Assembly (NCBI GenBank): GCA_950097015.1
Contig: CATNEN010000029.1
Span: forward strand, 248,001 to 312,000
Length of the DNA stretch: 64,000 bases
Source: Macrostomum hystrix
Taxonomy: Eukaryota; Animalia; Platyhelminthes
Direction of reading: 5' to 3'
Part shown: piece after piece, positions 11,101-58,907 of the stretch
Position numbering within the stretch: the stretch's first letter is position 1
How the letters are laid out: each line of letters opens with the position of its first letter
Notes under the pieces: model-generated
What the model saw: only the letters and a program-made list of their open reading frames with translations
Told to the model about the DNA's origin: nothing
The model's database searches: none
Made by a program: the position numbers and the translations under genes

Positions 11101-11575
11101 GGACTGGGAGACACTGGTACAAGAGGACTGGGAGACACTGGTACAAGAGGACTGAGAGAGACACTGGTACAAGAGGACTGAGAGACACTGGTACAAGAGG
11201 ACTGGGAGACACTGGTACAATAGGACTGAGAGAGACACTGGTACAAGAGGACTGGGAGACACTGGTACAAGAGGACTGGGAGACACTGGTACAAGAGGAC
11301 TGGGAGACACTGGTACAAGAGGACTGGGAGACACTGGTACAAGAGGACTGAGAGAGACACTGGTACAAGAGGACTGGGAGACACTGGTACAAGAGGACTG
11401 GGAGACACTGGTACAAGAGGACTGGGAGACACTGGTACAAGAGGACTGGGAGACACTGGTACAAGAGGACTGAGAGAGACACTGGTACAAGAGGGACTGG
11501 GAGAGACACTTGTACAAGATGGACTGGGAGACTCTGGTACAAGAGTGACTGGGAGACACTGGTGCAAGAGGGATC
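8136..11575. repeat. Minisatellite, about 24-bp unit, 3.4 kb, with nested block duplications
   Basis: Unit GACTGGGAGACACTGGTACAAGAG with 23-26 bp variants. Confidence 0.95.
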
Positions 11576-12042
11576 TACCCTTTCTGCCCACATTTTCTTC
11601 TACTCTGATAAATTCTTAGTCGTAAATATTTCAAGCAAGAGCAGATAGGAGGGCCAACAACAGAAACAAGATAAGCAGATTTGGTTCGGGTTGCAAAATA
11701 CTCTCATGCGTTAGTTTTGTGGAAGATTAAAATGAAATGAAGCGCAACTAGAAGGTGTCAGGTTGGGAGCTGATTGCTTCCCTGAACTCATGGCTTAAGA
11801 CTGAGAACTCATTAGGAGCAGACCCAAAATTTGAAAGAAATACGAATAACTGTCCGTTCTCATTTCTGTCATATGCAAATTAAACAAAAGACGCCAAGAC
11901 ATTTTTTTCTTATCAGGCACTCAAGTTTCGCTTCAGGTTATAGTCGGTGGGCTCTGGGGCGGTCCTGCTGAGTATGGGAATGTGGCGGGAGAATGCGTTG
12001 GACGCATGGAGGCTGCAGAAAAATACAAAAGGATGGGGAGAG

Positions 12043-13810
12043 TGCAGAAAGATGCGGATGGGGCTGCAGAAAGATGCGGATGGGGATGCAGAAAGATGCG
12101 GATGGGGATGCAGAAAGATGCGGATGGGGCTGCAGAAAGATGCGGATGGGGCTGCAGAAAGATGCGGATGGGGCTGCAGAAAGATGCGGATGGGGCTGCA
12201 GAAAGATGCGGATGGGGCTGCAGAAAGATGCGGATGGGGCTGCAGAAAGATGCGGATGGGGATGCAGAAAGATGCGGATGGGGATGCAGAAAGATGCGGA
12301 TGGGGCTGCAGAAAGATGCGGATGGGGATGCAGAAAGATGCGGATGGGGATGCAGAAAGATGCGGATGGGGCTGCAGAAAGATGCGGGATGCAGAAAGAT
12401 GCGGATGGGGCTGCAGAAAGATGCGGATGGGGCTGCAGAAAGATGCGGATGGGGCTGCAGAAAGATGCGGATGGGGCTGCAGAAAGATGCGGATGGGGCT
12501 GCAGAAAGATGCGGATGGGGCTGCAGAAAGATGCGGATGGGGCTGCAGAAAGACGCGGATGGGGCTGCAGAAAGATGCGGATGGGGATGCAGAAAGATGC
12601 GGATGGGGATGCAGAAAGATGCGGATGGGGATGCAGAAACATGCGGATGGGGATGCAGAAAGATGCGGTTGGGGATGCAGAAAGATGCGGATGGGGCTGC
12701 AGAAAGATGCGGATGGGGATGCAGAAAGATGCGGATGGGGATGCAGAAAGATGCGGATGGGGCTGCAGAAAGATGCGGATGGGGCTGCAGAAAGATGCGG
12801 GATGCAGAAAGATGCGGATGGGGCTGCAGAAAGATGCGGATGGGGCTGCAGAAAGATGCGGATGGGGATGCATAAAGATGCGGATGGGGATGCAGAAAGA
12901 TGCGGATGGGGATGCAGAAACATGCGGATGGGGATGCAGAAAGATGCGGTTGGGGATGCAGAAAGATGCGGATGGGGCTGCAGAAAGATGCGGATGGGGA
13001 TGCAGAAAGATGCGGATGGGGATGCAGAAAGATGCAGAGAATGCAGAAAGATGCGGATGGGGCTGCAGAAAGATGCGGATGGGGATGCAGAAAGATGCGG
13101 ACGGGGCTGCAGAAAGATGCGGATGGGGATGCAGAAAGATGCGGTTGGGGATGCAGAAAGATGCGGATGGGGATGCAGAAAGATGCAGAGAATGCAGAAA
13201 GATGCGGATGGGGCTGCAGAAAGATGCGGATGTGGATGCAGAAAGATGCGGATGGGTATGCAGAAACATGCGGATGGGGATGCAGAAAGATGCGGATGGG
13301 GATGCAGAAAGATGCAGAGAATGCAGAAAGATGCGGATGGGGCTGCAGAAAGATGCGGATGTGGATGCAGAAAGATGCGGATGGGGATGCAGAAACATGC
13401 GGATGGGGATGCAGAAAGATGCGGATGGGGATGCAGAAAGATGCGGATGGGGCTGCAGAAAGATGCGGATGGGGCTGCAGAAAGATGCGGATGGGGATGC
13501 AGAAAGATGCAGAGAATGCAGAAAGATGCGGATGTGGCTGCAGATAGATGCGGATGGGGATGCAGAAAGATGCGGATGGGGATGCAGAAAGATGCGGATG
13601 GGGATGCAGAAAGATGCAGAGAATGCAGAAAGATGCGGATGTGGCTGCAGATAGATGCGGATGTGGATGCAGAAAGATGCGGATGGGGATGCAGAAAGAT
13701 GCGGATGGGGATGCAGAAAGATGCGGATGGGGCTGCAGAAAGATGCGGATGGGGCTGCAGAAAGATGCGGATGGGGATGCAGAAAGATGCAGAGAATGCA
13801 GAAAGATGCG
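12043..13810. repeat. Minisatellite, 22-bp unit
   Basis: Unit GCAGAAAGATGCGGATGGGG(A/C)T. Confidence 0.95.
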
Positions 13811-14544
13811 GAGGATGTAGGGAGAAGTGGAGGCTGCTGAAGCATTACGGAGGCTCTGCTGAATGTACTGAAAGTTGCAGTTCCTGTTGCTATGCTATAG
13901 AAGGCACTATTTGGGCAATGAAAATTAAAACCAGCACATCTCATTCTACTGCTAAATGTGTCTTGCACCTTGCCTGAAGTTGATTGTGCAATTAAAATAG
14001 CCATTAGTCGTATTTTCAGATGTCGCATTTTCCATTATCACTAAAGCTAGTCTTCAAAGTCTGATTTGCCAAGATTTTCCATCATTTCTCGGACAAAGGC
14101 CTGCTGGATGCAATCCTGCCGGGCATAGTGGTTTTGGCAGACTGCTGTCGCCGCACTAAAAGCCGGCGCACTTCACTTTTGTCCATCCGATACTCCGCTG
14201 TCAAAACAGACGGACAGACGGACTGTAGGCTGTTCTTGTCCGCTGCGCCACCTGACACGCCCAGGCTCTTAAGCGGTGTTTGGACATGATGCCAGCTTCA
14301 CTACCTGCTTATTTACTTTGCTTGTGTACCTGCGACGGGTCCTATTTCCCAATCCTCAGCGTTTGATGCCGGCCTAAGGTTAAAGGAATTGAATCTACAG
14401 CTACAGCGCTTGTAAAATAAGCACCAATGTGAAATGCAGAAGACAGTCGACAAGCAATGGGTAAACAGAGACGCGAATGGTGTGGAGATTCTGATTCTGG
14501 GAGAGGTCATGGAGGTAGAACGGTGGGTGGGGGACGCAGGGTTG

Positions 14545-16040: not shown

Positions 16041-16242
16041 AGGTCAAGCTTGAATTCTTAGTGTTCTCTAGGTGAAACAATGTGATAATGAAATTCACTT
16101 TATGAAGAACAACAGCAGCCACTGCTCAGTCGAGCATACTCTTCAATTAAAACTGTGATACAGGCTTTAAAAAGATTACTCTGCCCTTTAATTTAAACTC
16201 CAGTAAAAAACATGGATGCTGCATTCTTCAAATTTTTTTTGT

Positions 16243-16432
16243 GGTCTCCCCAGTCCGCAGCCTCCATCCAGCTACATCCTGGTCTCCCCAGTCCGCAGCC
16301 TCCATCCAGCTACATCCTGGTCTCCCCAGTCCGCAGCCTCCATCCAGCTACATCCTGGTCTCCCCAGTCCGCAGCCTCCATCCAGCTACATCCTGGTCTC
16401 CCCAGTCCGCAGCCTCCATCCAGCTACATCCT
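16243..16432. repeat. 38-bp tandem repeat at the stop codon/3' UTR of SLC23 paralog A, about 5 copies
   Basis: Unit GGTCTCCCCAGTCCGCAGCCTCCATCCAGCTACATCCT. Confidence 0.92.
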
Positions 16433-19400
16433 GCTCTCCTGGTGTCCGCAATCCATTGCAGCCTCGGAAGGGTTCGGCAGGCTCGCTGGAAAGAGCGGCA
16501 GGCGGTGCAGGCCGGGCAGGTGGACGCTGTAGAACCTGTGGAAGGCAGCCGACTCGTAGCAGTCCACCTGCCGGCGGAGCTCCGCCTTCACCCGGTCGCC
16601 ACCGGCGACTTCGTCTTCGGCCGCATCCCGATCCACCTCCAGACCTCGCTCCTTGCGTGTGCCTGAAGGCAAGGGTGCGCAAAATGTATGAACTTCGAAG
16701 ACAAATTCGGGATCCAGATTTGAATTAGATCCTTCTTAGCGTGCACCCTGGCAAAGACGTACCTGGCAGACAGCAGTCCAGCAGCAAGGCAGTTGCAGTT
16801 CCTACCAGCATCTCATTGCTGAGAAGATCCTGGCAGATGCTGACAGTGATCTCTTGGGCCGATGCTGCAATTTTGTGGATTACTTGAAGTTGCGAAGTAG
16901 GCAGTGGGGCCGGTCGATAGGTAAGTTGATTAGGTAAGAAGAAAGACTCAAGCAAACTCCTCACAGGACATTGTGGCTGCCTCGCGCTGTCGGCTCGCCT
17001 TGATATGTAGCGGCACAACAACGCCGAGGAAGACGCTGAAGCCGAACACGAACGCGTTTCTCGGCCGGTCCATCCGGACGCTCCGGAGGCTGCCCGCGGC
17101 GACGCCGCAGATGATGCCGATGGTGGACAGCAGCACGCCGCCGATGATTGGGTCGGGGATGCACACGAACAGGGCGCTGAGCTTCGGGAACAGGCCGAAC
17201 AGGAGCAGGATGGCAGAGGTCGCCTGCATCACGCGACGACTCGCCACCTTCGTCATGCTGATGGCAGCGATGTTGTTGCTGTAGGAGGTCGGTCCCACCG
17301 GCAGTCCGAACAAACCACTCACGAGGCAGCCGAAGCCCTCGGCTGCGATGCCTGCGAAGGATTTTGGAGGTTGGCGCCTGCGCTTCTGAAACGCTTTGTT
17401 GGAAATCCAAGGACTTTACACTATGCTATGTTCGTATAATGCTTTTACGCCGAGCAAGTTGAATGATGAACTTCCATGACTTTTTAGGAAAAAAATCCTA
17501 ATAGCAAAAAATCACCAAAATAGGCATCCATTTTTCGCTCACAAAATTTCATCATGTCACCATGTCGGCTGTTATTGTTGAGTATTTTATATTATTATAT
17601 AGGTAAGTAATATATTATTGAACCGATATGGGTTCGCCATAGAGGTTTATACGAAGCAATGTCAGTTGTCCTTGTCACCAGATCTTCGAAAAGAATCACC
17701 GAGTACCTCGATAATGATGACTCAAAGGCTTTTAATGCGCAAAATTCTGGTGGTGCACTTTCTACGAAATCGGTCATTCGGTTTCGGAGCTATCGTGAAG
17801 TAGGCAGTGGGTATTCGAAACACTCCCGCCATCTTTCCCCAGAGAAAAGTTGACCCATTCTTGACGCCAATGTTTTTGGATATTGGTCTTGCTGGATGTC
17901 TGTCTGTGGTGCTTGCTTTTGCAATGGGTAACCTTGGTCGCAGTTTCCCGTGATTTGTTTATGGCACGAACCGTATTCATGAATGGGCGGACTATGACTA
18001 AATGAAACATTTTCGTGGGCAAAGTTGATTAAATTTTTGGGAAAAATGACTAGCCTGTACTCATTCGCAAGAAAGTGACAATGTGCTGAATGCTCTACTA
18101 TGATCAGTAGACATTCAGAGCGAGCTCACCTCGGTTCATGGGGAAGCCGACGGGACTGGCGGAGCCGCAGAACTTGGCGCAGGTCACGTAGTCGCCGATG
18201 CTCTCCATGATGGAGACGAGAATCGCGCAGCTGACCGCCACAACGCCAGGCCCGTTGACCGACAGCCTGCCGAACTGCAGCGGGTGCGGCAGCCGGAACC
18301 AGCCGGCGTTCGCCACCGCTGACGACTTCCCGTCGGTGCGCCCGCCGTAGCCCCAGGCCTTCGGGTTGTTCGGCAGGACGTCCGTGACAGTCAGCACGTG
18401 GCACACCGAGTACATGATAGCCATGGACAACAGGATCTGCTCGGTTTAAAAAATGGCACTCATATTCTTAATAACTGTTGCTGGGTCCCAATGCTTATCC
18501 TTTAGGCTTCACCGATTAACGATTAAATTACAACTGATTGAGACCAGTTAGGACGCCTGCTTTGAGCACCTAATTGAATTAGGGCCGTAAGCCCTGGGGA
18601 GCAAGGGGGCCGCGGCCCACACTAATCGGCTGACGAAACTATTGAGGCGCCGCCTCCCCCAATCGGCTGACCCCCTGGTATTGGCTCCCCCTGGTATTGG
18701 CTCCCCCTGGTATTGGCTCCCCCTGGTATTGGCTCCCCCTGCTATTGGCTCCCCCTGGTATTGGCTCCCCCTGGTATTGGCTCCCCCTGGTATTGGCTCC
18801 CCCTGCTATTGGCTCCCCCTGGTATTGGCTCCCCCTGGTATTGGCTCCCCCTGGTATTGGCTCCCCCTAATATTGGCTCCCCCTGGTATCGGCTCCCCCT
18901 GGTATTGGCTCCCCCTGGTATTGGCTCCCCCTGGTATTGGCTCCCCCTAATATTGGCTCCCCCTGGTATTGGCTCCCCCTAGTATTGGCTCCCCCTGGTA
19001 TTGGCTCCCCCTAGTATTGGCTCCCCCTGGTATTGGCTCCCCCTGGTATTGGCTCCCCCTAGTATTGGCTCCCCCTGGTATTGGCTCCCCCTGCTATTGG
19101 CTCCCCCTAGTATTGGCTCCCCCTGGTATTGGCTCCCCCTGGTATTGGCTCCCCCTGGTATTGGCTCCCCCTGGTATTGGCTCCCCCTGGTATTGGCTCC
19201 CCCTGGTATTGGCTCCCCCTAGTATTGGCTCCCCCTGGTATTGGCTCCCCCTGCTATTGGCTCCCCCTAGTATTGGCTCCCCCTGGTATTGGCTCCCCCT
19301 GGTATTGGCTCCCCCTAGTATTGGCTCCCCCTGGTATTGGCTCCCCCTAGTATTGGCTCCCCCTGGTATTGGCTCCCCTAGTATTGGCTCCCCCTGGTAT

Positions 19401-22400
19401 TGGCTCCCCCTGGTATTGGCTCCCCCTAGTATTGGCTCCCCCTGGTATTGGCTCCCCCTAGTATTGGCTCCCCCTGGTATTGGCTCCCCCTGGTATTGGC
19501 TCCCCCTAGTATTGGCTCCCCCTGGTATTGGCTCCCCCTGCTATTGGCTCCCCCTAGTATTGGCTCCCCCTGGTATTGGCTCCCCCTGGTATTGGCTCCC
19601 CCTGGTATTGGCTCCCCCTGGTATTGGCTCCCCCTGGTATTGGCTCCCCCTGGTATTGGCTCCCCCTAGTATTGGCTCCCCCTGGTATTGGCTCCCCCTG
19701 CTATTGGCTCCCCCTAGTATTGGCTCCCCCTGGTATTGGCTCCCCCTGGTATTGGCTCCCCCTAGTATTGGCTCCCCCTGGTATTGGCTCCCCCTAGTAT
19801 TGGCTCCCCCTGGTATTGGCTCCCCTAGTATTGGCTCCCCCTGGTATTGGCTCCCCCTGGTATTGGCTCCCCCTGGTATTGGCTCCCCCTAGTATTGGCT
19901 CCCCCTGGTATTGGCTCCCCCTGGTATTGGCTCCCCTAGTATTGGCTCCCCCTAGTATTGGCTCCCCCTAGTATTGGCTCCCCCTAGTATTGCCTCCCCC
20001 TGGTATTGGCTCCCCTAGTATTGGCTCCCCCTAGTATTGGCTCCCCCTAGTATTGCCTCCCCCTGGTATTGGCTCCCCCTGGTATTGCCTCCCCCTAGTA
20101 TTGGCTCCCCCTGGTATTGGCTCCCCCTGGTATTGGCTCCCCTAGTATTGGCTCCCCCTAGTATTGGCTCCCCCTGGTATTGGCTCCGCCTAGTATTGGC
20201 TCCCCCTGGTATCGGCTCCCCCTGGTATTGGCTCCCCCTGGTATCGGCTCCAACCCCCAAAGGCGCGGATTTTACAAGAAGAAAATCATGGCTACGCCAG
20301 GATTGACTCACCGGCAACGCTGAAAACACGGCGATTCGGGCCACTCGAATCCTTCGCTGTTGAAACGAAAAGTGGGGAATGGGGACTTGAACCCGATCAA
20401 CCCCGTAGGTGAACAAAATGATTAAGATGCAGCACCTGGAACAGATTAGACGGCTGTTTGTCAGGTGAATTAAAATTTACTTGAACCTGCTCTAAATATT
20501 ATGTTCTTGTCACTCACGCCATCGCCAGATAGAACTGCGGCGCACACAGCTTCAGGACGGCACCCATGACGCTGAAGCCGATGAGGAAGATGGTCGGCGC
20601 CACCACCAGCGGGCTGACGAAGTGCAGCAGGCGACTCATCACCCCGGTGCTCCCGATGAGAAGCTGCAAGATGGAGCCGACCGCGATGGTGCCGGCCACC
20701 TGGCCGATGCGCGAGTGCCACAGCTGCTCGCCCGACTGCGGCAGCACCGTTGTGCCGTTCTCCAGGGTCCCGTTGCCTGGAGTAACCAGGTGTGATTACC
20801 AGAGGCCATGAGTTAAGATAGAGGTAGAAAGGTAACCTAAGTCTTTGTGTTAGCAGGTTATCAAATTAAGAATATTTGCTGACTTTTTGGTTTGCTAGTT
20901 AGTTACGAGCGTTGTTACTTTCGTTTGGTTTGCTAGTTAGTTACGAGCGTAGTTACTTTCGTTTGGTTTGCTAGTTAGTTACGAGCGTAGTTACTTTTGT
21001 TTGGTTTGCTAGTTAGTTACGAGCGTTGTTACTGTCGTTTGGTTTGCTAGTTAGTTACGAGCGTTGTTACTTTCGTTTGGTTTGCTAGTTAGTTACGAGC
21101 GTTGTTACTTTTGTTTGGTTTGCTAGTTAGTTACGAGCGTTGTTACTTTCGTTTGGTTTGCTAGTTAGTTACGAGCGTTGTTACTTTCGTTTGGTTTGCT
21201 AGTTAGTTACGAGCGTTGTTACTTTCGTTTGGTTTGCTAGTTAGTTACGAGCATAGTTACTTTCGTTTGGTTTGCTAGTTAGTTACGAGCGTAGTTACTT
21301 TTGTTTGGTTTGCTAGTTAGTTACGAGCGTTGTTACTTTCGTTTGGTTTGCTAGTTAGTTACGAGCGTTGTTACTTTCGTTTGGTTTGCTTGGTTAGTAA
21401 GCTTGGTGCCCAATGGTCAGAAGTTCGAATCGCATCCTAAACTAAACAATATTGTGTACGTTAGCAAGACACTTAATTCCCTCCTCAGTGCTTCAGTTCA
21501 TACGGCTGTATTAATAGTACCAGTATGAATACGAGAAATTTGTGTTCGTACGTCTGCCCCCCCACTCCATAGACAGAACAGCTGCACAAAGCCTTTGGAA
21601 GAGCCGTGCAATAGCTGCGGCTGTACCACTGGCCCATGAAATCAAAGTTATTTCCAGCCGAGATTTACCAACGAGCTTCAAGTCAGGGCAAACCGAGACG
21701 TCGCTGGCCATGATTCCAACGGCCACTGGATAAAAAACAATGCTTGGTCCCTGGGCAATGGGCAGCCTGATGCCAAGGCTGCATTGTACCAGGGTCGTGA
21801 TGCCCATCACGAAGAAGCAGGAGGCGATGAGGTTCGACTTGTCCACCTCGTCCTGCACGCAGGCGGCCTCGAACAAGATGATGACACCGAAGGCGCAGCC
21901 GCTGCTCATGATGATGAAGTGCTGGAAGCCCAGCAGCAGCGTCAGGTACCATCTGGGGTTGTCGTTCAGCCCGTAGGTCAGGCGCAGAGCTTTGGTTTAG
22001 CGAGTGGGATAATCAGGTGTTGGAAGTCTGCTTTAAAAGTACATTTAGCTAATGTGATGATGTGATGATGGCCTGAGTACCCTGAGACAGAACTCTGCAA
22101 TATCCGTTTCACGGGCCTCAAAACAAACATCTCGTGGGCCTTTGTAACAAACATTTATGTATGCTTCATTGATTGAGGTTGAGTTAATGCTAAAATTGTT
22201 GGTTCAGTCAACCCTGATCAGATCAAAATTATCTCTTCAATAACTGTGAAGAGTAATTTTAAGTTCGTCTATCTAGAACTATTTTGAGTAGCTGCTCACG
22301 AAACCACTGCAATCACATTCTTCCATCTAGAACTATTTCGAGTAGCTGCTCACGAAACCACTGCAATCACATTCTTCCATCTAGAACTATTTTGAGTAGC

Positions 22401-23215
22401 TGCTCACGAAACCACTGCAATCACATTCTTCCACCTAGAACTATTTTGAGTAGCTGCTCACGAAACCACTGCAATCACATTCTTCCATCTAGAACTATTT
22501 TGAGTAGCTGCTCAAGAAACCACTGCAATCACATTCTTCCATCTAGAACTATTTCGAGTAGCTGCTCACGAAACCACTGCAATCACATTCTTCCATCTAG
22601 AACTATTTTGAGTAGCTGCTCACGAAACCACTGCAATCACATTCTTCCATCTAGAACTATTTTGAGTAGCTGCTCACGAAACCACTGCAATCACATTCTT
22701 CCACCTAGAACTATTTTGAGTAGCTGCTCACGAAACCACTGCAATCACATTCTTCCATCTAGAACTATTTTGAGTAGCTGCTCAAGAAACCACTGCAATC
22801 ACATTCTTCCATCTAGAACTATTTCGAGTAGCTGCTCACGAAACCACTGCAATCACATTCTTCCATCTAGAACTATTTTGAGTAGCTGCTCACGAAACCA
22901 CTGCAATCACATTCTTCCATCTAGAACTATTTTGAGTAGCTGCTCAAGAAACCACTGCAATCACATTCTTCCATCTAGAACTATTTTGAGTAGCTGCTCA
23001 CGAAACCACTGCAATCACATTCTTCCATCTAGAACTTTTTTGAGTAGCTGCTCACGAAACCACTGCAATCACATTCTTCCATCTAGAACTATTTTGAGTA
23101 GCTGCTCAAGAAACCTCTCAAATCACACAGTACAATCCTCACCGCCGAGAGCCGCATGCTTCTCATTGTCAGGATGGCCCGTCTTGAGCGCCTGCATTTC
23201 CGTGGCGTCAGCCAT
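16424..23215 (-). CDS. SLC23A: SLC23/NAT (NCS2) nucleobase-ascorbate transporter, paralog A; 8 exons, 603 aa predicted
   Basis: Exons 23215-23143, 21989-21669, 20776-20518, 20435-20312, 18436-18130, 17351-16965, 16864-16763, 16662-16424. Phases are compatible and total 1812 nt. Motifs: LLGFQH (TM1 QH), MESIGDY (TM8), TSYSNNIAAISMTKVASRRV (NAT signature region), PDPIIGG, RNAFVFGFS. Confidence 0.9.
18670..20250. repeat. Minisatellite, 16-bp unit, about 98 copies, in intron 4 of SLC23 paralog A
   Basis: Unit TATTGGCTCCCCCTGG. Confidence 0.95.
20886..21400. repeat. Minisatellite, 37/38-bp unit, in intron 2 of SLC23 paralog A
   Basis: Unit TTGGTTTGCTAGTTAGTTACGAGCGTTGTTACTTTCGT. Confidence 0.95.
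21406..21510 (+). mobile_element. SINE family 1, truncated copy
   Basis: GTTCGAATC followed by GTGTACGTTAGCAAGACACTTAATTC. Confidence 0.65.
22271..23115. repeat. Minisatellite, 54-bp unit, about 15 copies, in intron 1 of SLC23 paralog A
   Basis: Unit TCTAGAACTATTTTGAGTAGCTGCTCACGAAACCACTGCAATCACATTCTTCCA. Confidence 0.95.
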
Positions 23216-23731
23216 TTACAGTTAGTTTGCCCAGGTGAGTTGGGTTCTGAGTACTGAAACTTATTAAATAACAATTTGCTTCAGTGCAGTGACTCCGGCC
23301 ATTGTATATGTAGACTGAAAGTAGAGTGCAGCCCGCAGAAATTGGTTAGAACTCACCCGAAGTATACAAGCCTGTTCAGGGGATTCCTGTATTTCTACTT
23401 GGTTACTACTGGCCGTGCAACAAGCACGCGCACTGAAATATTAGTGCTGTGAGAGACCCATTCCGTGCCTATATTGGCACCCTTGTTCCTGTCTCCCTTA
23501 TCTTGGTTCCCTTGAGATAATAAATTTGCAACTGATAGTGGCTTACAATGCGAAAGCACTCGTGTTGGCTAGCTCCGCTTAGTTAAGCCTTTATCTGTAC
23601 TAAAGCAGTGAAGCGCAATCCTTAGTTTTAAGCTGTCGCTAATAATTAAAAATTATTAAAATTGTTTTGTCCTTTGTTTGGTGTTTGTGTCTGGGTCAAA
23701 GAAAACACGGTACTTGATTTTAATTTTGCGC

Positions 23732-24050
23732 AGAGGTTGTAGCCTAGTGGTTAGGGCGTCGGACTTACGACTTGAAGGTCGGGGGTTCGATTCCCGAATC
23801 TACTGGAACAATTTGTGTCCTTTAGCAAGACACTTAACTCTGCATTGCGTCAGTTCACCCAGCTGTTAAACGGGCACCAGCATCAGCTGGGATAATTGAA
23901 GGTGGGTGTGGCGTCTCCCCAGTCCATGGACTGAACGGCTGTACGCAGCCTTCAGATCCGCCGCGCAATATCTGCGGCTGTGTTGTCGGCTGCACATCTG
24001 GCCCGATTGGGACAGGTGTAATCAATTATTATTATTTATTATTATTATCT
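23732..24050 (+). mobile_element. tRNA-derived SINE family 1, near full length
   Basis: A-box TAGCCTAGTGG and B-box GGTTCGATTCC. CORE-like body GTGTCCTTTAGCAAGACACTTAAC..CACCCAGCTGTTAAA. 3' tail GGTGTAATCAATTATTATT. Homologous copies occur elsewhere in the window. Confidence 0.8.
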
Positions 24051-24636
24051 AATCTTACTCATAAATTACTCTTTGACTCCATTGTAGAGTTGATATCTAA
24101 CTGACAACTATTATATAAGCTGAAATTTGGTTTGGTATGAACTCATGCGAGTGTATTATGAAGGTCACATGCGTCCCTCAGACCTCAAATTGACATCAAA
24201 ACAATGCTGCAAATGTTAAAGTGAAAAATCAATGTCACCTCTTTATATTTTGCTATAAAATATTGGTTCGGAAGACGTTTCTAAAATTCAGTAGTAACGT
24301 AACTATTCGTGACCAGCACTTTTACTTTCCAAATATGTTTTTGAAGCGCACAGTGAGTTCTTTGTACGAAAACACTAATTAAGTAACAATAAAAGCGTCC
24401 GATTTTTGTATTTTAGTACGACTGCTTTTTCTGTGCCATGAAGAAAAAAACGTTTTTAACTTATGGCACCTAAACGCAAAATATCCTATTGCTCGTTATT
24501 ACGCTAGCCGACAATACCGACCTGTCTTTTGTGTGGTTTAGATATTGATTTGTGCCTTGTAGTGCAACTTAGCTCGTACACCCGTGGGAACCAAACACAA
24601 AGGTACAGTGAGAGTGTACTCTGCCTGGCTATAAGT

Positions 24637-25028
24637 CTACATCCTGGTCTCCCCAGTCCGCAGCCTCCATCCAGCTACATCCTGGTCTCCCCAGTCCGCA
24701 GCCTCCATCCAGCTACATCCTGGTCTCCCCAGTCCGCAGCCTCCATCCAGCTACATCCTGGTCTCCCCAGTCCGCAGCCTCCATCCAGCTACATCCTGCT
24801 CTCCTGGTGTCCGCAGCCTCCATCCAGCTGCATCCTGGTCTCCCCAGTCCGCAGCCTCCATCCAGCTGCATCCTGGTCTCCGCAGTCCGCAGCCTCCATC
24901 CAGCTACATCCTGGTCTCCCCAGTCCGCAGCCTCCATCCAGCTACATCCTGGTCTCCGCAGTCCGCAGCCTCCATCCAGCTGCATCCTGGTCTCCCCAGT
25001 CCGCAGCCTCCATCCAGCTACATCCTGC
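24637..25028. repeat. 38-bp tandem repeat at the stop codon/3' UTR of SLC23 paralog B, about 10 copies
   Basis: Same unit as 16243-16432. Confidence 0.92.
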
Positions 25029-28000
25029 TCTCCTGGTGTCCGCAATCCATTGAAGCCTCGGAAGGGCTCGGCAGGCTCGCTGGAAAGAGCGGCAGGCGGT
25101 GCAGGCCGGGCAGGTGGACGCTGTAGAACCTGTGGAAGGCAGCCGACTCGTAGCAGTCCACTTGCCGGCGGAGCTCCGCCTTCGCCCGGTCGCCACTGGT
25201 GACTCCATCTTCGGCCGCATCCCGATCCACCTCCAGACCTCGCTCCTTACGTGTGCCTGGGAACGAGGGGTTCTTAGTGCGTATCAAATCATGAGGAGAA
25301 CTCTGATTCAGAGTTTTCAAAGCATGCAGCCTGGGCAGACAGGAGTCCAGCTGCAGGGCAGTTCGATGAGGATCCATCATTGAGATATCATTTATGGCAT
25401 CATCATTTATTTTTTTATTGCTAAAACACACTAACCTACTCCACCAGAGTTCAAATGCACATTACATCACTTACATTTCAGTCATGTTCTAGCCACACAG
25501 CGTTAAAACTACTTGCCTACCACGCCTTTTCCTACAAATGCTCTATCTTACTAGATGGCATTCCATCGACATTTGAACTCTCCTCTATGTGTTCTGAACA
25601 GTGTTTTCTCTGCTTTACCTGCCTGTGTAAACAAGTAGCTGCACTTGTCTATGGCCATAACACTCGTCACAAAGTGAGAGAGGAGTACGTTAGAGAACGG
25701 AGACTGGCTTAAATGTGAGCTTTCTATTTATCTTCGACTCGCTTAGTTTCACAGCCCTGAGCTACGAGATCAGTAGGATCTGCGCTGAAGATACCGGTGA
25801 CACCAGAAACGGATGGTCGCCTTTCTTCGACTCCGGAGGTTTCACAGCTTGTCGAGGCTCCCTCGCGCACGCTTCCAGCAGATCATGCGTGGATCACAGA
25901 CTGCATACCAGCAGTGGTTCACTAAATATCAGTGAACGTAACGCACCTGGCAACAGGCAGTCCAGTAGAAGAGCAGTGCTCGTTCCGACTAGCATTTCAT
26001 TGCTGAGCAGATCCAGCATTATTGAAGTTGGTACTGACTCGTCTGTAATGAAGCGGAGGTTAGGATGAGCGGTGCAAAAAGCCAATGCAAAGTCTAAAAA
26101 AGAAATTTCTCATGTACCGATCCGTTTTGGTCGGCTCGCCTTGACCTGTAGCGGCACAACAACGCCGAGGAAGACGCTGAAGCCGAACACGAACGCGTTT
26201 CTCGGCCGGTCCATCCGGACGCTCCGGAGGCTGCCCGCGGCGACGCCGCAGATGATGCCGATGGTGGACAGCAGCACGCCGCCGATGATCGGGTCGGGGA
26301 TGCACACGAACAGGGCGCTGAGCTTCGGGAACAGGCCGAACAGGAGCAGGATGACAGAGGTCGCCTGCATCACGCGACGACTCGCCACCTTCGTCATGCT
26401 GATGGCAGCGATGTTGTTGCTGTAGGAGGTCGGTCCCACCGGCAGTCCGAACAAACCACTCACGAGGCAGCCAAAGCCCTCGGCTGTAATGCCTGATTCA
26501 CAAGGAAATTCATGGTCAATTTAAGGGTCGACATTACAGCTTTGGGGTTTTTTGGTATGAAGTTTTGAGGGTAATGCAGAGCGTTCTAGATTTCAAGAAG
26601 GATTCAACGATTAAGTTCTAAGGATACAGTTTCGGGGTGATTGGCTGAGCGGTAGACTCTGCGGTCGAGGCCGCATTCATTTGACGCGCAGCCGTGGAGC
26701 GATGATTTTGCGCGCTTGTCGTGTAATTTACACCCACGAGGGCAAACCCCCCAAAACAGCTACACCGCAGAGGGAGAGTGTACACCGCAATAAAATGAAA
26801 AGTCAAGGTGTGTGTTAACCTTTTGGGTGAGTGGGTGCCTGGGCTAAGCGCTGACAGCGGGTCTACAGTCACTAAATGTTGTGCAAGAGTCCAAAGCCAA
26901 TATTATTTCTAAGGATAAAGTTTCGATTTTTTAATCTTATTTGCCCAACTCAGATGGCAACCAACCGCGGTTCATGGGGAAGCCGATGGGACTGGCGGAG
27001 CCGCAGAACTTGGCGCAGGTCACGTAGTCGCCGATGCTCTCCATGATGGACACGAGAATCGCGCAGCTGACCGCCACTACGCCGGGCCCGTTGACCGACA
27101 GCCTGCCGAACTGCAGCGGGTGCGGCAGCCGGAACCAGCCGGCGTTCGCCACCGCTGACGACTTCACGTCCGTGCGCCCGCCGTAGCCCCAGGCCTCCGG
27201 GTTGTTCGGCAGGACGTCCGTGACAGTCAGCACGTGGCACACCGAGTACATGATAGCCATGGACAACAGGATCTATTCAAAGGAGGTTTTAGTTTTTCAA
27301 TTTTAAACTTGGTGGCTGGGACTTTAAGATTCTTGAGCACTTTAGTATTGAGTGTAAAGCAGTGCTCTCCGGACGGACTCACAGGCAGAGATGAGAATAT
27401 GGCGCATCTGGTCACCCTGACGCGTCGTTGCCGAAACGAAAAGTACGGAAGGGGCACCCCGACCCAGTCCAGCGCATATGTGAAAGCGATGATCAGCACA
27501 CAGCAGCTGAAAATCAGGTGTCGAGCATTTAAAATGGTTGCATTTTATAACAATATTGATAATAGTAATACCTAGAATTCCTTAGGAAAATGGGATCTGC
27601 ACAATTTGTCGCTCAAAAGTAGAACGCGAAGTCCGTTTTGTCTTTAAGTGTGGCTGGAGTCCATACAGTTCAATCAGGGAGAATATTTTCCAAGAAATAC
27701 TAACTGATTGCTGTGGCTAACTTAGAAGATGACGAATGCATATACCGAATGGCGCAAGAAAGTGAAGAACTGACACAAGGACTAGCGTTATTTGCCTAAT
27801 ACTATTTGAAATTATAGAAAGCGAACAGCTTAAGACTTCATTTTGGTATAAATAGCGACATAATGATAGTAAATATATACGCAAAATCTGTCTACACCAG
27901 CTGACCTGAGTTTGACTTTCTGTTTATGCAAACACGCAGAACAAAAATAAATATCTAACTACAGAGCTCTTGTGTCAGACTGAGCAGCTCACGTGTGTTT

Positions 28001-29547
28001 GAGTCTTCCACAACGAATTTCATCTTGAACTGAAAAATATTAGCTTTATCTTCATTTCAGTATTGGCTCACTCACGCCATTGCCAGGTAGAACTGCGGCG
28101 CACACAGCTTCAGGACGGCACCCATGACGCTGAAGCCGATGAGGAAGATGGTCGGCGCCACCACCAGCGGGCTGACGAAGTGCAGCAGGCGACTCATCAC
28201 CCCGGTGCTCCCGATGAGAAGCTGCAAGATGGCGCCGACCGCGATGGTGCCGGCCACCTGGCCGATGCGCGAGTGCCACAGCTGCTCGCCCGACTGCGGC
28301 AGCAACGTTGTGCCGTTCTCCAGGGTCCCGTTGCCTGGTGAACAAACGGTGGATGAATTCCCCTTGCATAAATAGTTAGTCAGAAAGAAGCCAGATTGTA
28401 TGCAGTTTTATTTGCAAGGAGCGGTGGGCAATAGTGGATCAGTTCTGCCCATTCTTCTGATTTCTGAACACTCACACAGGTGTGTACATCTGTCTCTTCG
28501 TCAGCAGTGTACACTCTCACTGTGCCTTGGAGGTTGGCCCTCAAGGGTGCAAATTTCACAAGCACCCAAGCCTTCTCTCCGCAGCTGCGCCCCAAATGAA
28601 TGTGGCCCCGCCGCGGAATCGAGCCCAGGGACCTTGGTGCGAGAGGCAAACGCGTTGACCGCTCTGCCACTCACCCTCAGGTTAGCTCACATCGGCGGCA
28701 GTAAAATCTAGAAAACATTAGGAAAAGACATTGGGAACAAAACAAATACTGCTTGATGTTTCCTGGAATCCTTTCTCGACAAATCAACTGCGTGTCTTTT
28801 CTAGCACACCTTGAGAATCAAAGTGGGTTCAGCAGGTTTTTAGGTCTGAGTTTGTCCATTGCGGGGCAGCCATTCAGTTCTGGCATCATTCTGCACAAAT
28901 ACTCGTATAATGTGGGAATCGAAACGGCACATCCTGATCTTGCTTTACCTTTCAGCTTCAAGTCAGGGCAAACCGAGACGTCGCTGGCCATGATTCCAAC
29001 GGCCACTGGATAAAAAACAATGCTTGGTCCCTGGGCAATGGGCAGCCTGATGCCAAGGCTGCATTGTACCAGGGTCGTGATGCCCATCACGAAGAAGCAG
29101 GAGGCGATGAGGTTCGACTTGTCCACCTCGTCCTGCACACAGGCGGCCTCGAACAAGATGATGACACCGAAGGCGCAGCCGCTGCTCATGATGATGAAGT
29201 GCTGGAAGCCCAGCAGCAGCGTCAGGTACCATCTGGGGTTGTCGTTTAGCCCGTAGGTCAGGCGCAGAGCTGAAGTCGGATTTGAGCATAGTTAGTCAGT
29301 CATGCTTTCTAATTCACAGTATAGACTGATATTTAACCGCTTGAAATTCTATGATTAGGTAGAGAGGTTTAATTTATATCAGAGATGTGCTCTGTAGTGT
29401 CTGCAATGGTCACAGTCGGTCATTCTTGAAATAACGATACCATACCACATTTCCAACTGCTAGTTCTTTGAACTGCTCACCTTCAAACTCCAGATCTGGA
29501 GGCTCCTGCTTCTCGTCAGTACCTGTGTTGCTGGCTTGAATAGTCAT
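25018..29547 (-). CDS. SLC23A: SLC23/NAT (NCS2) nucleobase-ascorbate transporter, paralog B; 8 exons, 595 aa predicted
   Basis: Exons 29547-29481, 29269-28949, 28334-28076, 27506-27383, 27272-26966, 26492-26118, 26042-25947, 25256-25018. Same phases and motifs as paralog A; total 1788 nt. Confidence 0.9.
26642..26790 (+). mobile_element. SINE family 2, old diverged copy in intron 5 of SLC23 paralog B
   Basis: CGCAGCCGTGGAGCG..GCTTGTCGTGTAATTTACACCCACGAGGGCAAACC..GAGAGTGTACAC aligns loosely to the family 2 body. Confidence 0.5.
28485..28672 (-). mobile_element. tRNA-derived SINE family 2
   Basis: Reverse complement aligns with 32246-32490 and 36186-36410 (GAGAGAAGGCTTGGG..CCCTTGAGGGCCAACCTC..ACAGTGAGAGTGTACAC). 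Confidence 0.7.
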
Positions 29548-29574
29548 GAGATATCCTGACTGATGCTGAGTCGG

Positions 29575-30022: not shown

Positions 30023-30584
30023 CCGCTTCCTGTTCGCTCGATTTGGTTCCGAAGTCCTTTGAACCAATGTCCCACTGAGTAAGCACTGAGTAGTCTCTCT
30101 GCTTTCAATGAGATAAGGCCTTTCAGAAGTGGAGCCGCTGTCCCTGTACAATCGGACACCTGCGACCTTTCTTTTAGTTGTCTACAAAATAGATTTCTTC
30201 AAATTTGACTCCAACCTTGTGATTTAAGCACTTCAGCTTAGAAATTCTGTATTTTTATGCCACAAATAGCTACAGACCGAACTGCTTGCTTTATGGGCTC
30301 CTTGTGACCCGTTCTGGTGGACTTGAAATCTAAATTGCATTTTCAACAAATTATTCAAATCGTTGGGCATTCAAATATTTACTTGCAGAACTGTATGGCC
30401 TGTGAACTCTCATTCCTTCTCTCTCCAAATAGCATACGATTTGTGTTATCAATCCTTATGCAAAGCGTGCAGGTAACAAGTTGCTCTTTGCTGTGTCAAA
30501 ACAAAGTCTCTCAGGCTACAAGCCTTAAAGCCAAAGTTGAAACTTAAAAAGCGAATTAGAGGTTGCCTCTTAAGTCCTGGGGTG

Positions 30585-32113
30585 TTTGTGTCTTGAGTCC
30601 TAGGGTGTCTGTGTCTTGAGTCCTTGGGTAATCTGTGTCTTGAGTCCTAGGGTAATCTGTGTCTTCAGTCCTAGGGTAATCTGTGTCTTGAGTCCTAGGG
30701 TAATCTGTGTCTTCAGTCCTAGGGTAATCTGTGTCTTGAGTCCTAGGGTGTCTGTGTCTTGAGTCCTAGGGTAATCTGTGTCCTTGAGTCCTAGGGTAAT
30801 CTGTGTCTTGAGTCCTAGGGTAATCTGTGTCCTTGAGTCCTAGGGTGTCTGTGTCTTGAGTCCTAGGGTAATCTGTGTCTTGAGTCCTAGGGTAATCTGT
30901 GTCTTCAGTCCTAGGGTAATCTGTGTCTTGAGTCCTAGGGTAATCTGTGTCTTGAGTCCTAGGGTAATCTGTGTCTTGAGTCCTAGGGTGTCTGTGTCTT
31001 CAGTCCTAGGGTGTCTGTGTCTTGAGTCCTTGGGTAATCTGTGTCTTGAGTCCTAGGGTGTCTGTGTCTTGAGTCCTAGGGTAATCTGTGTCCTTGAGTC
31101 CTAGGGTGTCTGTGTCTTCATTCCTAGGGTAATCTGTGTCTTGAGTCCTAGGGTAATCTGTGTCTTGAGTCCTAGGGTAATCTGTGTCTTCAGTCCTAGG
31201 GTAATCTGTGTCTTCAGTCCTAGGGTAATCTGTGTCTTCAGTCCTAGGGTAATCTGTGTCTTCAGTCCTAGGGTAATCTGTGTCTTGAGTCCTAGGGTAA
31301 TCTGTGTCTTCAGTCCTAGGGTAATCTGTGTCTTGAGTCCTAGGGTGTCTGTGTCTTCAGTCCTAGGGTGTCTGTGTCTTGAGTCCTTGGGTAATCTGTG
31401 TCTTGAGTCCTAGGGTGTCTGTGTCTTGAGTCCTAGGGTAATCTGTGTCCTTGAGTCCTTGGGTAATCTGTGTCTTGAGTCCTAGGGTAATCTGTGTCTT
31501 GAGTCCTAGGGTGTCTGTGTCTTGAGTCCTAGGGTAATCTGTGTCCTTGAGTCCTAGGGTGTCTGTGTCTTGAGTCCTAGGGTAATCTGTGTCTTGAGTC
31601 CTAGGGTAATCTGTGTCTTGAGTCCTAGGGTGTCTGTGTCTTCAGTCCTAGGGTGTCTGTGTCTTCAGTCCTAGGGTAATCTGTGTCCTTGAGTCCTAGG
31701 GTAATCTGTGTCTTCAGTCCTAGGGTAATCTGTGTCTTGAGTCCTAGGGTGTCTGTGTCTTCAGTCCTAGGGTGTCTGTGTCTTGAGTCCTTGAGTCTTG
31801 TGTCTGCTGTCACTCCTGTGTCTGCTGTCACTGTATAATCTGTGTCTTCAGTCCTAGGGTGTCTGTGTCTTGAGTCCTTGGGTAATCTGTGTCTTGAGTC
31901 CTAGGGTGTCTGTGTCTTGAGTCCTTGGGTAATCTGTGTCTTGAGTCCTAGGGTGTCTGTGTCTTGAGTCCTTGGGTAATCTGTGTCTTGAGTCCTAGGG
32001 TAATCTGTGTCTTGAGTCCTAGGGTGTCTGTGTCTTGAGTCCTAGGGTGTCTGTGTCTTGAGTCCTAGGGTAATCTGTGTCCTTGAGTCCTAGGGTAATC
32101 TGTGTCTTGAGTC
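30585..32113. repeat. Minisatellite, 23-25-bp unit
   Basis: Unit GAGTCCTAGGGTAATCTGTGTCTT / GAGTCCTAGGGTGTCTGTGTCTT. Confidence 0.95.
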
Positions 32114-32245: not shown

Positions 32246-32490
32246 CTGTGGCAGAGCGGTTAACACGTTTGCCTCTCGCACCAAGGTCCCTGAGCTCGAT
32301 TCCGAGCCGAGGCCACTTTCTTTTGGGGGCGCAGCCACGGAGAGAAGGCTTGGGGGCTTGTCTTACAATTTACGCCCTTGAGTGCCAACCTCAAAAACAC
32401 AGTGAGTGTACACTGCCTGACGATGAGAAAGTCAGGGCAGATGTACTGTAGTACACACCTGTGTGAACGTGTGCCTGCTTACAGTATCTG
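32246..32490 (+). mobile_element. tRNA-derived SINE family 2
   Basis: A-box-like GGCAGAGCGGTTAA, B-box-like GAGCTCGATTCC, and the shared body sequence. Confidence 0.7.
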
Positions 32491-57220: not shown

Positions 57221-58907
57221 CACTTAGGTTGCTGCCACCCCTTTAGCTAGCAGACAGGCCGTTTTTGCCCTTTAACATGCTTTCCGATCTTCATAATTCG
57301 GATATAATTCGACCCAGTTTCCGCCTTGAGTATTATTTACAAAGCTTTACAAAAAGCACTACATTCCCCCCAGGCCTCAGCAAAATGGCGCAGAAAAACA
57401 AACACAAGAGAGACTTGATCCGACGGATTGCACCTTAACACAACAAAAAAATTACTTACAGTGTTCACAGATTTCACAGAGTTTTCACAAAAGTTTTCAC
57501 TTTTAATAGAGCATCCTCTTATTCAGCTAGTCAGTAAGATGATCATAGTCTAATCGTGACGCTATCGGCCTAAAATCAAACGCTTTATATAGACCTGCAA
57601 AAGTATTCTATAGCGCAAAGATCACAGGGATGATTTTTAGGGACATTTTTGGCCTGAGCTTGCTGTGTGCTAGGGTAAAGTGGGGTGTAGAGGCGGCTGT
57701 AATTGATGAGCCTGCACCCCGGCCATTGCGCCGCCCACCCCCACTCCCTGGGGGTGAGGGAAAGGAAACATCAAAGGAGGCGTGCCGACTGTTCTTAGTA
57801 TTTATTAAGTCGGGATGTGAGAAGGTAGAGAAGGAGGAGAAAGGAACTTTTATATAGGCATACAATCATGTGTGTTAATTTAGCTCACTTTAGCTCGAAT
57901 AATTTCGTGTAGAGCGCAAAGGTCAACGGGTGCATTCATTGCAGCCTCACGTTATTTCAGTATAACTGTGTATTTACTTACTTTAAGCGTTAATATTTAT
58001 TACGCACAATCATTTTATTAATAATCTGTGATATACAAACATTTTCGTTTGTTTTGTGAGTAATACTCGCTCAACAGTTTTCATTTTCTTTTTTGAGAAA
58101 GCTTTACACCTGAGAACAAACTTTGCCAAGGAATTTCAGGAATTTACATGTGACTCATTATCGTGTCATGAGTGTGCACACACAGTGCCTTCAAATAATT
58201 GCTATGCTCAAGATTAGAGTCATTTGAAGAATCGCTGACACAAGTTAAGGTCTAAAATATAGTGTATACAGTTACAAATATATTTTAGTTACTTATTTGT
58301 TCACTCGTTAAAAAATACAAAATACCAAAAAGAAGTGAAGTGAACGCATATGTACATTGCCACACACTACATCTGTATTAAGCAGGTGATATCTCTTATC
58401 GATCAGGTGATGTCTGCTTAACAAGGCCAAAACAAAATCAGGGAAATGCTATTCTTTGAAACGACTGGCGGCATTTTTAATCCGCTTCATTGACCGGCTT
58501 CTGCGTCGAGGATAGAAGCTTAAACAAAGACTTTATCAGTGCAAACAGAACAAAGACTAGTTCGGATTGGTTTTAGAAATGCAAATTCTTTGTCGGACAA
58601 AATAGCCTCGTTTTGAAAATTTGCACCGAGATTGTCTTATCAAATATAGAGGGCAGGAAAAAGCCACAGTTGATTGTAAGAAATTAACTATAACAAAGCG
58701 TTATAACTCACTAAACAAGCGTTGAGCGCCTGACAATCAGATAAAACTGTCAATCACTGGGTACAGCTGTCACAAACCTCCAGTGCACATTGTCTAAAAA
58801 TAGTTGCTGGCCTCTATCTTATCTTTATTAAACTTAAGAGTTTATATTTACAGCAAATATACTAGATGTGTCCAATCCCAAAGTTCCAAAAAATATCTTC
58901 GTGGAAC

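Follow-up and report, generated by a model that had tools for sequence, protein, structure and literature searches.

The 64-kb stretch of DNA analysed here (the window) carries two tandem SLC23/NAT genes, both on the minus strand, gene A at 23215-16424 and gene B at 29547-25018, with about 6.3 kb from ATG to ATG (29547 vs 23215) and 8.6 kb from stop to stop. We rebuilt exon coordinates, lengths and GT-AG sites for both genes, and in this exon-by-exon reconstruction the reading frames are open and the phases consistent over exons 1 to 8 (E1-E8) in both A and B. The positions and phases of all seven introns are common to the two genes, and each gene retains all seven. The exon lengths reported in an earlier sequence-only reading (321, 259, 124, 307, 387/375, 102/96 and 239 nt for E2-E8, and 73/67 nt for E1) were all reproduced on rebuilding. 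The features are listed below, where pS denotes silent divergence between A and B, X1 an independently assembled DNA run, and X2 and X3 two runs with RNA-like contigs.

23143..23215, minus strand: candidate first exon of gene A (73 nt), starting with the ATG at 23215 and followed by donor GTGAGG, from ORF and donor scan
21669..21989, minus strand: gene A exon 2; 321 nt, homogenised, 6 mismatches against B, four of which fall within its final 5 nt; PF00860
20518..20776, minus strand: gene A exon 3; 259 nt, homogenised, 4 mismatches against B
20312..20435, minus strand: gene A exon 4; 124 nt, not homogenised, 64% nucleotide identity, pS 0.775
18130..18436, minus strand: gene A exon 5; 307 nt, homogenised, 8 mismatches against B
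16965..17351, minus strand: gene A exon 6; 387 nt, first 363 nt homogenised (7 mismatches), NAT signature region
16763..16864, minus strand: gene A exon 7; 102 nt, not homogenised, pS 0.73
16424..16662, minus strand: coding part of gene A exon 8; 239 nt ending in TAG (16426-16424), homogenised, 9 mismatches
16242..16439, minus strand: gene A 3'UTR minisatellite; 38-nt unit, 5.2 copies, stop codon inside the first unit
29481..29547, minus strand: first exon of gene B (67 nt), starting with the ATG at 29547 and followed by donor GTGAGC
28949..29269, minus strand: gene B exon 2; 321 nt, homogenised, X1 depth 148 vs ~72 in flanking introns
28076..28334, minus strand: gene B exon 3; 259 nt, homogenised, X1 depth 135, joined to exon 4 in an RNA-like X2 contig
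27383..27506, minus strand: gene B exon 4; 124 nt, not homogenised, X1 depth 74.8, spliced on both sides (X2, X3)
26966..27272, minus strand: gene B exon 5; 307 nt, homogenised, X1 depth 134.9, joined to exon 6 in an RNA-like X2 contig
26118..26492, minus strand: gene B exon 6; 375 nt, homogenised save for its tail
25947..26042, minus strand: gene B exon 7; 96 nt, not homogenised, X1 depth 76.7, spliced on both sides (X3)
25018..25256, minus strand: coding part of gene B exon 8; 239 nt ending in TAG (25020-25018), homogenised
24637..25033, minus strand: gene B 3'UTR minisatellite; 38-nt unit as in A, 10.4 copies

As judged from profile and structure-chain matches, A and B are members of the SLC23 / nucleobase-ascorbate transporter (NAT/NCS2) family. 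PF00860 (Xan_ur_permease, cut-off 27 bits) matches E2, E3, E5 and E6 with 40.4, 31.1, 36.3 and 116.8-120.2 bits, respectively, and these matches span profile positions 3-387 in order. The human SVCT1 chain 8jew_A is matched by E3 (7e-11, residues 138-202), E5 (5e-23, residues 257-357) and E6 (1.6e-24 to 2.8e-25, residues 359-479), so that SVCT1 (PDB 8jew, 7ytw) is colinear with exons 3, 5 and 6 of A/B over residues 138-479. A word search with exon 6 (128 aa) returned nothing at E <= 1e-10, the length window of that tool omitting full-length proteins. The NAT signature motif is [Q/E/P]-N-x-G-x4-T-[R/K/G]. The segment of A/B aligned to it reads N-N-I-A-A-I-S-M-T-K, which keeps N2, T9 and K10 and differs at positions 1 and 4; the aligned SVCT1 segment reads P-N-I-G-V-L-G-I-T-K. 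A/B have eight exons. Within the window, tblastn recovered no third copy of the transporter that could serve as an outgroup, no further duplicated gene was found, and an Rfam scan gave no match. Tandem repeats are abundant across the region, with long tandem arrays inside gene A, and many introns of the two genes are now occupied by minisatellites and SINE copies.

Identity between A and B is distributed as a mosaic. E2, E3, E5, E6 and E8, together with the 3'UTR minisatellite, are 96-98% identical, and the mismatch counts of the earlier reading for these exons (6 in E2, 4 in E3, 8 in E5, 7 in the first 363 nt of E6, 9 in E8) are the ones we obtain. The tail of E6 is diverged, with a length difference of 12 nt between the copies (387/375). 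Past the stop codon, homogenisation continues for 182 nt into the 38-nt minisatellite with 4 mismatches. E4, by contrast, which had been described as carrying about 45 mismatches (~64% identity), is mismatched at 44 of its 123 in-frame nucleotides on recounting (64.2% identity), and the residue and codon counts match as well, 14 of 41 residues being replaced and 16 of the 27 conserved codons differing at silent positions. In E7 the last 68 nt are 76.5% identical, in line with the ~76% originally given for its 3' two thirds, while the 5' third is unalignable and 9 of 31 residues differ. The alignment score of the two E1 copies is no better than chance (reached by 107 of 500 shuffles), and none of the seven intron pairs, the 75-110 nt introns included, gives a blastn-short match between A and B at E <= 0.01, both in accord with the view that E1 and the introns are unalignable. 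Silent divergence per exon, which the same reading had asked for, is far from uniform: the five long exons have pS values of 0.03-0.065, E4 and E7 values of 0.73-0.78 (silent differences in long vs short exons, Fisher p = 2.6e-31).

Could similar codon choice, rather than exchange of DNA, produce this silent-site identity? The very high GC3 of the long exons (0.76-0.94) lends some plausibility to convergence under very strong codon bias or to selection at the mRNA level. Given the codon usage of those exons themselves, however, 245 (54%) of the 456 conserved degenerate codons in the long exons would be expected to be identical, and 440 (96.5%) are, a comparison on which we rejected this explanation; moreover, the non-coding minisatellite 3'UTR is equally identical, and E4 and E7 of the same transcripts lack any such effect, leaving codon convergence with a negligible probability. 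The silent-site and non-coding identity beyond codon bias also bears out the claim that purifying selection alone is insufficient. In E4 and E7, 21 of 48 conserved degenerate codons are identical (44%) vs 19 expected (40%), so that their silent sites are effectively randomised, which upholds the proposal that the duplication is old. GC3 is 0.86 in the homogenised exons vs 0.60 in the others (p = 1e-12), with GC at codon positions 1 and 2 equal (0.52 and 0.49). The raised GC3 is what GC-biased conversion is expected to leave (PMC2720389). Part of the rise may reflect codon preference; a neighbouring GPCR gene has a GC3 of 0.77.

Near-identical segments are a classic assembly hazard, and the region is rich in tandem repeats, so a collapsed, chimeric or cross-polished assembly, or else a recent duplication with fast intron change, had to be weighed. 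In the independently assembled X1 graph the long exons are unbranched nodes at a depth of ~135-154, and the B-specific flanking contigs that carry introns, E4 and E7 stand at ~68-77, which is the pattern expected of two-copy and single-copy sequence, respectively; the single-copy B paths show small differences of their own from the window. Together with the codon comparison and the 3'UTR, this double depth sustains the claim that homogenisation of the long exons took place in the DNA. The interior differences of E8, E3, E2 and E5 collapse in X1 into one path of about twofold depth with mixed A/B states, and differences at the edges between A and B still branch; read from these collapsed contigs, which drop variants, the pattern is suggestive of A/B differences being polymorphic. 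Contigs of X2 and X3 have coverage confined to exons and a few retained introns, and thus behave as RNA. Their spliced contigs confirm the E3/E4 and E5/E6 junctions of gene B and both sides of E4 and E7, with the gene B-specific E4 and E7 spliced onto shared exons. A-specific letters at E5 and E8 in the RNA-like contigs show that gene A is expressed, and both copies are expressed. We considered X2, labelled as another organism, as a sister-species outgroup and discarded it, its contigs being identical to the window, introns included. The X1 graph and the joining of B-specific E4 and E7 to shared exons argue against an assembly artefact, and saturated silent sites in E4/E7 with zero intron similarity are incompatible with the age that 2% divergence would imply, making this class of explanation very improbable.

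Within the long exons, mismatches are concentrated at the ends. Positions up to 10 nt from a long-exon edge carry 17 mismatches in 90 nt (19%), and interior positions 27 in 1411 nt (1.9%); the contrast has p = 7e-11, or p = 4e-5 when the E6 tail is left out. A/B identity stops 0-7 nt from the splice sites, or within the exon. Interior mismatch density among the long exons ranges from 0.4% to 3.7% (p = 0.036-0.039), a spread that fits separate events per exon. A single conversion event over the whole gene is disfavoured, as interior divergence varies by exon and no intron was homogenised.

These edges also bear on the nature of the template. Identity is limited to transcribed exonic sequence, 3'UTR included, A and B are both expressed, and cDNA-templated conversion has a precedent in a proposal on ribosomal protein paralogues of fungi (PMC6993855), all of which would suit a spliced cDNA or mRNA template in place of the neighbour's genomic DNA. 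The fungal paralogues resemble A/B in that coding sequence is homogenised, with dS far under intron divergence, and introns and flanks are diverged; unlike them, A/B have internal short exons that were skipped, exon ends that are the least converted, and no intron lost. In any cDNA, E4 and E7 would lie between converted exons, yet they are untouched; the exon ends beside the junctions are the least homogenised; and a junction-crossing tract would remove an intron, whereas all seven are kept in both copies and no copy lacking introns turned up. The runs that yielded the spliced contigs, in addition, behave as RNA. Because of the skipped short exons, the unconverted ends and the retained introns, a genomic template with single-exon tracts fits A/B better, and we regard a cDNA template as improbable.

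Conversion appears to be sorted by exon, and the sorting follows block length. The converted blocks measure 259-387 nt, with E8 plus UTR at 421 nt or more, and the unconverted ones 67-124 nt. The unconverted exons are the three shortest of eight, an arrangement with p = 1/56 (0.018), or p = 1/21 for internal exons only, in each case at one locus; E1 is a special case in this length comparison. Published MEPS values are ~200 bp in yeast and rodent cells (PMC3924818, PMC3966225), or >200 bp in mouse and 337-456 bp in human (PMC3966225). The longest perfect A/B runs at present are 81-185 nt, under nominal MEPS. Of the exon-length threshold put forward in the earlier reading, the size ranking of the exons stands, and length as its cause is consistent with the data only; that block length decides which exons stay in exchange seems to us slightly favoured. 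The accompanying idea of an in vivo minimal conversion length holds insofar as the published MEPS of ~200 bp falls inside the cut-off interval of 124-239 nt, and it is a loose bracket, drawn from eight exons at one locus. The experimental value falls in the gap between unconverted (<=124 nt) and converted (>=239 nt) blocks here, although MEPS experiments use engineered substrates and single events, and A/B show what evolution has left at a single locus of an invertebrate-like animal genome, with history and selection as confounding factors.

Selection offers another way of sparing E4 and E7: conversion would operate as above, but converted alleles in these two exons would be removed owing to functional divergence and not shortness. 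E4 is colinear with SVCT1 residues ~216-256 and E7 with the stretch past 479, and both presumably lie in the gate/dimerisation half of the SLC23 fold, so that a common functional reason is conceivable; the residues that differ number 14 of 41 in E4 and 9 of 31 in E7. Such 'islands of divergence' kept by selection have precedent, having been described and modelled (Teshima and Innan, as discussed in PMC3728101). Against this, dN is far under the saturated dS in both exons with no sign of positive selection, a few selected residues would not alone block conversion of a whole exon unless homology is already lost, and E1 and the exon edges escape too, which length and edge geometry explain and selection does not. 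The size cut-off, moreover, sits at the experimental MEPS value. We consider selection on E4/E7 unlikely, if less so than a cDNA template.

The best explanation of the locus is, with high probability, ectopic gene conversion restricted to homology islands the size of exons. Following an ancient tandem duplication, the introns have lost all A/B similarity, and each exon, flanked by introns with no remaining similarity, would have become an isolated homology island. Non-allelic (ectopic) conversion, with the DNA of the neighbouring gene as template, would then repeatedly overwrite the interior of islands that are long enough. Those still exchanging would be E2, E3, E5, E6 and E8 plus 3'UTR (259 to 420 or more nt), and E4 (124 nt), E7 (~100 nt) and E1 (~70 nt) would have left the exchange long ago and diverged to saturation. 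Tracts would stay within a single exon, so that introns are never carried along, and would seldom reach the final 5-25 nt at exon edges; we infer that conversion recurs separately for each exon. The account as a whole, from ancient tandem duplicates through per-exon conversion from the neighbour's genomic DNA to the dropping out of short exons, is in our judgement probable.

A and B appear recently duplicated over most of their length and anciently duplicated on two exons, and trees or dS dating of this family in this genome will mislead unless run exon by exon. The pair is an unusually clean natural experiment, with eight blocks of differing length at equal distance and in the same chromatin, in which a 124-239 nt bracket agrees with MEPS from engineered substrates and conversion depletion at block edges is measurable. 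More tentatively, and with the balance somewhat against it, in this minisatellite-rich animal genome fast loss of intron homology might make every exon of tandem paralogues its own recombination substrate, with exon length (a step at ~150-250 nt) deciding which exons remain under concerted evolution over very long times. If so, mosaic paralogues should be common genome-wide, exon identity plotted against exon length would give a natural germ-line MEPS estimate in a non-model animal, and the anchoring length at tract ends (~5-25 nt) would also be estimable. A/B alone are a single data point, the value of which lies in genome-wide repetition.

Exon-restricted conversion has already been described, and the edge mismatch excess and the GC3 contrast are new here. 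In mammals, the pairs BMP8A/B, DDX19A/B and TUBG1/2 undergo long-lasting concerted evolution (PMC2720389) and are, like A/B, old duplicates forming a concerted/divergent mosaic with GC3 raised in the concerted parts; their tracts include introns, which was a selection criterion of that study, whereas those of A/B include none. The general argument for exon-restricted conversion has been made in a Caenorhabditis review (PMC3966223), and in the copepod Tigriopus californicus GOT1Sd and GOT1Sr show exon-restricted inter-paralogue conversion with unalignable introns (PMC3728101). As in A/B, exons of the Tigriopus pair go on exchanging sequence, and an intron that can no longer be aligned bars exchange; the reading is shared too, with fast-diverging introns dropping under the homology threshold. 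In A/B, unlike Tigriopus GOT1, seven introns isolate eight exons so that the outcome can be read exon by exon, with short exons out of the exchange, edges depleted of conversion, and both copies intact and expressed.

Both minus-strand genes of the tandem pair, genes A and B, belong to the SLC23/nucleobase-ascorbate transporter (NAT) family, with exons E2, E3, E5 and E6 of each separately matching Pfam PF00860 in profile order, and E3, E5 and E6 aligning colinearly with residues 138-479 of human SVCT1. Their GT-AG introns occupy seven common positions and phases, the frames are open throughout, and no third gene copy was found within the 64-kb window.

23215 (candidate start) to 16424 (stop), minus strand: gene A, eight coding exons
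29547 to 25018, minus strand: gene B, eight coding exons

The NAT signature segment in E6 (26118-26492 / 16965-17351, genes B and A) is N-N-I-A-A-I-S-M-T-K, as against P-N-I-G-V-L-G-I-T-K in human SVCT1, and because of this difference we presume that the substrate may be other than ascorbate. The window also holds a single-exon, 488-aa rhodopsin-family GPCR open reading frame (PF00001, 3353-4819, plus strand) and an exon encoding a C4 zinc finger of the nuclear-receptor type (PF00105, 52834-53841, minus strand), and thus derives from an animal genome.

Comparison of the two genes exon by exon reveals a mosaic. A recount reproduced all exon lengths, mismatch counts and codon and residue counts of the earlier sequence-only reading, and silent divergence, computed per exon pair, is non-uniform, with pS (the proportion of differing silent sites) at 0.030-0.065 in the long exons (E2, E3, E5, E6, E8) versus 0.73-0.775 in E4 and E7 (silent changes, long versus short exons, p = 2.6e-31).

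Coding exons of gene A compared with gene B
E2: 321 nt in both; 6 mismatches; pS 0.046
E3: 259 nt in both; 4 mismatches; pS 0.030
E4: 124 nt in both; 44/123 mismatches; pS 0.775
E5: 307 nt in both; 8 mismatches; pS 0.065
E6: 387 nt in A, 375 nt in B; 7 mismatches in the first 363 nt; pS 0.056
E7: 102 nt in A, 96 nt in B; 36/93 mismatches; pS 0.73
E8: 239 nt in both; 9 mismatches; pS 0.053

In E4, 14 of 41 residues are changed and 16 of 27 conserved codons differ synonymously, and E7 retains 76.5% identity across its last 68 nt, its 5' third being unalignable. No perfect run in E4 exceeds 12 nt and none in E7 exceeds 11 nt, versus maxima of 81-185 nt in the long exons. That E1 and the introns cannot be aligned was likewise borne out: E1 (73/67 nt) aligns between A and B no better than with shuffled sequence, and none of the seven intron pairs gave a match, down to 7-nt words. 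Convergence through codon bias was rejected as the source of the identity, as independent codon draws from the long exons' own usage predict 245 identical codons out of 456, versus 440 observed. The same test gives 19 expected and 21 observed among 48 codons in E4 and E7, whose silent sites are therefore fully randomised.

A/B identity stops at exon boundaries or slightly inside them. E2 carries four differences in its last 5 nt, and E6 has two differences at its start and an unalignable last 12-24 nt, including the 12-nt length difference. Counted over the nine true long-exon edges, the outermost 10 nt hold 17 differences in 90 positions, versus 27 differences in 1411 interior positions (p = 7e-11, or 4e-5 when the E6 tail is left out). 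Constraint should be no weaker at the ends of an exon than in its middle, so the edge mismatches point to a physical process, in which tracts need anchorage inside the homologous block. Interior mismatch density also varies across the long exons, from 0.4% (E2) up to 3.7% (E8; p about 0.04), and separate events per exon fit this better than one event. The homogenised 3' block runs 182 nt past the stop codon with four mismatches, so non-coding DNA has been homogenised too; there it enters the 3'UTR, which in both genes is made up of a 38-nt minisatellite.

16242-16439: 38-nt 3'UTR minisatellite array of gene A, 5.2 copies
24637-25033: 38-nt 3'UTR minisatellite array of gene B, 10.4 copies

The stop and last codons lie inside the first array unit (16424-16439 in A, 25018-25033 in B), and in the array of B the C-terminal coding unit occurs once more near 24800, as though the array had arisen from the 3' end of the coding region.

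We compared four public sequencing runs with gene B alone (25034-29560, 4527 letters). The first, X1, behaves as genomic DNA; small indels and several intron positions set it apart from the window, so that it comes either from a different individual or from the second haplotype of the one assembled. Its contigs holding the B introns, E4 and E7 have a depth of 68-77, and E2, E3, E5 and E8 lie on separate unbranched contigs at a depth of 135-154, equivalent to two copies; both ends of these contigs fall within one k-mer of the outermost A/B differences. This contig structure and depth exclude a collapsed, chimeric or cross-polished assembly as the origin of the mosaic; a chimeric or collapsed assembly was one of the refutations that the sequence-only reading had named. 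Recent duplication was also tested and rejected. The X1 graph is split by near-edge A/B differences only; interior differences (seven sites in E8, two in E3, one in E2, and E5) share one path of roughly twice the depth, in which A and B states are mixed.

25034-25249: mixed-state stretch, E8
26968-27274: mixed-state stretch, E5
28088-28338: mixed-state stretch, E3
28954-29246: mixed-state stretch, E2

This may hint at polymorphism of the interior A/B differences, and so at exchange that still continues, but contigs drop minor variants. The remaining runs, X2, X3 and X7, behave as RNA, with spliced contigs and coverage of exons plus a few retained introns. X2 carries the label of a second organism, yet its sequence equals that of the window even in the introns, and its spliced E3-E4 and E5-E6 contigs of gene B show zero differences. 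In X3, E4 and E7 of gene B are spliced at both sides, and both X3 and X7 carry gene A letters at E8 and E5 differences, which shows that A is transcribed as well as B. A low-depth RNA-like contig of X7 joins 27152-27514 to 28084-28228 with intron 4 of B kept; the join misses each of the canonical E3/E4 splice sites by 8 nt, has no GT-AG, and could be either an aberrant transcript or an artefact.

We propose a model where an old tandem duplication would have been followed by divergence of the introns and their invasion by minisatellites as well as by a tRNA-derived SINE of very high abundance, leaving the exons as homology islands. Break repair templated by the neighbouring copy would then keep resetting the interiors of islands that are long enough, and in too short an island conversion would be rare, mismatches would pile up and the long perfect run would be lost, resulting in permanent escape. 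Confinement of tracts to one exon would account for the lack of homogenisation in every intron, those of 75-110 nt included. Ectopic gene conversion is very probably the process behind the mosaic. The sequence-only reading had further placed a length threshold between 124 and 239 nt; the eight exons of this one gene pair split perfectly by length at that interval, which brackets the minimal efficient processing segment of ~200 bp determined for yeast and for rodent cells (PMC3924818, PMC3966225), and as the deciding factor block length is a reading towards which we lean only slightly. The serious rival is divergent selection on E4 and E7, of the kind treated under "islands of divergence" in PMC3728101; we consider it unlikely, since each of the two exons has a dN much lower than its dS, and E1 and the exon edges escape too. 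A cDNA template (PMC6993855) would equally spare the introns, but it predicts junction-crossing tracts, intron loss and conversion of E4 and E7, none of which is seen, making it very improbable.

Base composition follows the same division, with a GC3 of 0.86 in the homogenised exons versus 0.60 in E4 and E7 (p = 1e-12), the first two codon positions being alike in GC (0.52 and 0.49) and intron GC 0.36-0.48, one repeat-filled intron excepted. GC-biased conversion produces raised GC3 of this sort (PMC2720389); codon preference is a possible source of the contrast as well, as the neighbouring GPCR has a GC3 of 0.77.

Minisatellites make up roughly a third of the window, in more than 25 arrays with 16-87-nt units and up to 139 copies, many of them in introns of genes A and B, and two arrays produce a strong GC and AT skew at 8149-13812. 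Several diverged copies of a tRNA-derived SINE-like element are also present, its summed k-mer depth in X1 reaching ~1.9 million (single-copy depth ~75).

8149-11571, 12043-13812, 18671-20251, 22264-23127, 30568-32113 and 58907-60367: example minisatellites
28490-28670: SINE-like element, intron 2 of gene B
32248-32431, 36183-36376 and 26655-26788: further stretches of the SINE-like element
23731-23806: tRNA-Val-like sequence between genes A and B (ARAGORN)
33619-34707: 18-nt array, ~60 copies

Translation of the 18-nt array gives a histidine-rich repeat matching Pfam Plasmodium_HRP, a homology rejected as a low-complexity match.

We found no report of an explicit exon-length dependence in the open-access literature. 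The value of the locus lies in its resolution: eight blocks of differing lengths in one pair, with a perfect length split and a measurable edge effect. Exon-restricted conversion itself is not new, and the locus belongs to an already described process, since inter-paralogue conversion in Tigriopus GOT1 is likewise limited to exons because the introns can no longer be aligned (PMC3728101), the reasoning behind exon restriction is already found in reviews (PMC3966223), and mammalian pairs, like genes A and B, combine long-lived concerted evolution with raised GC3 (PMC2720389).
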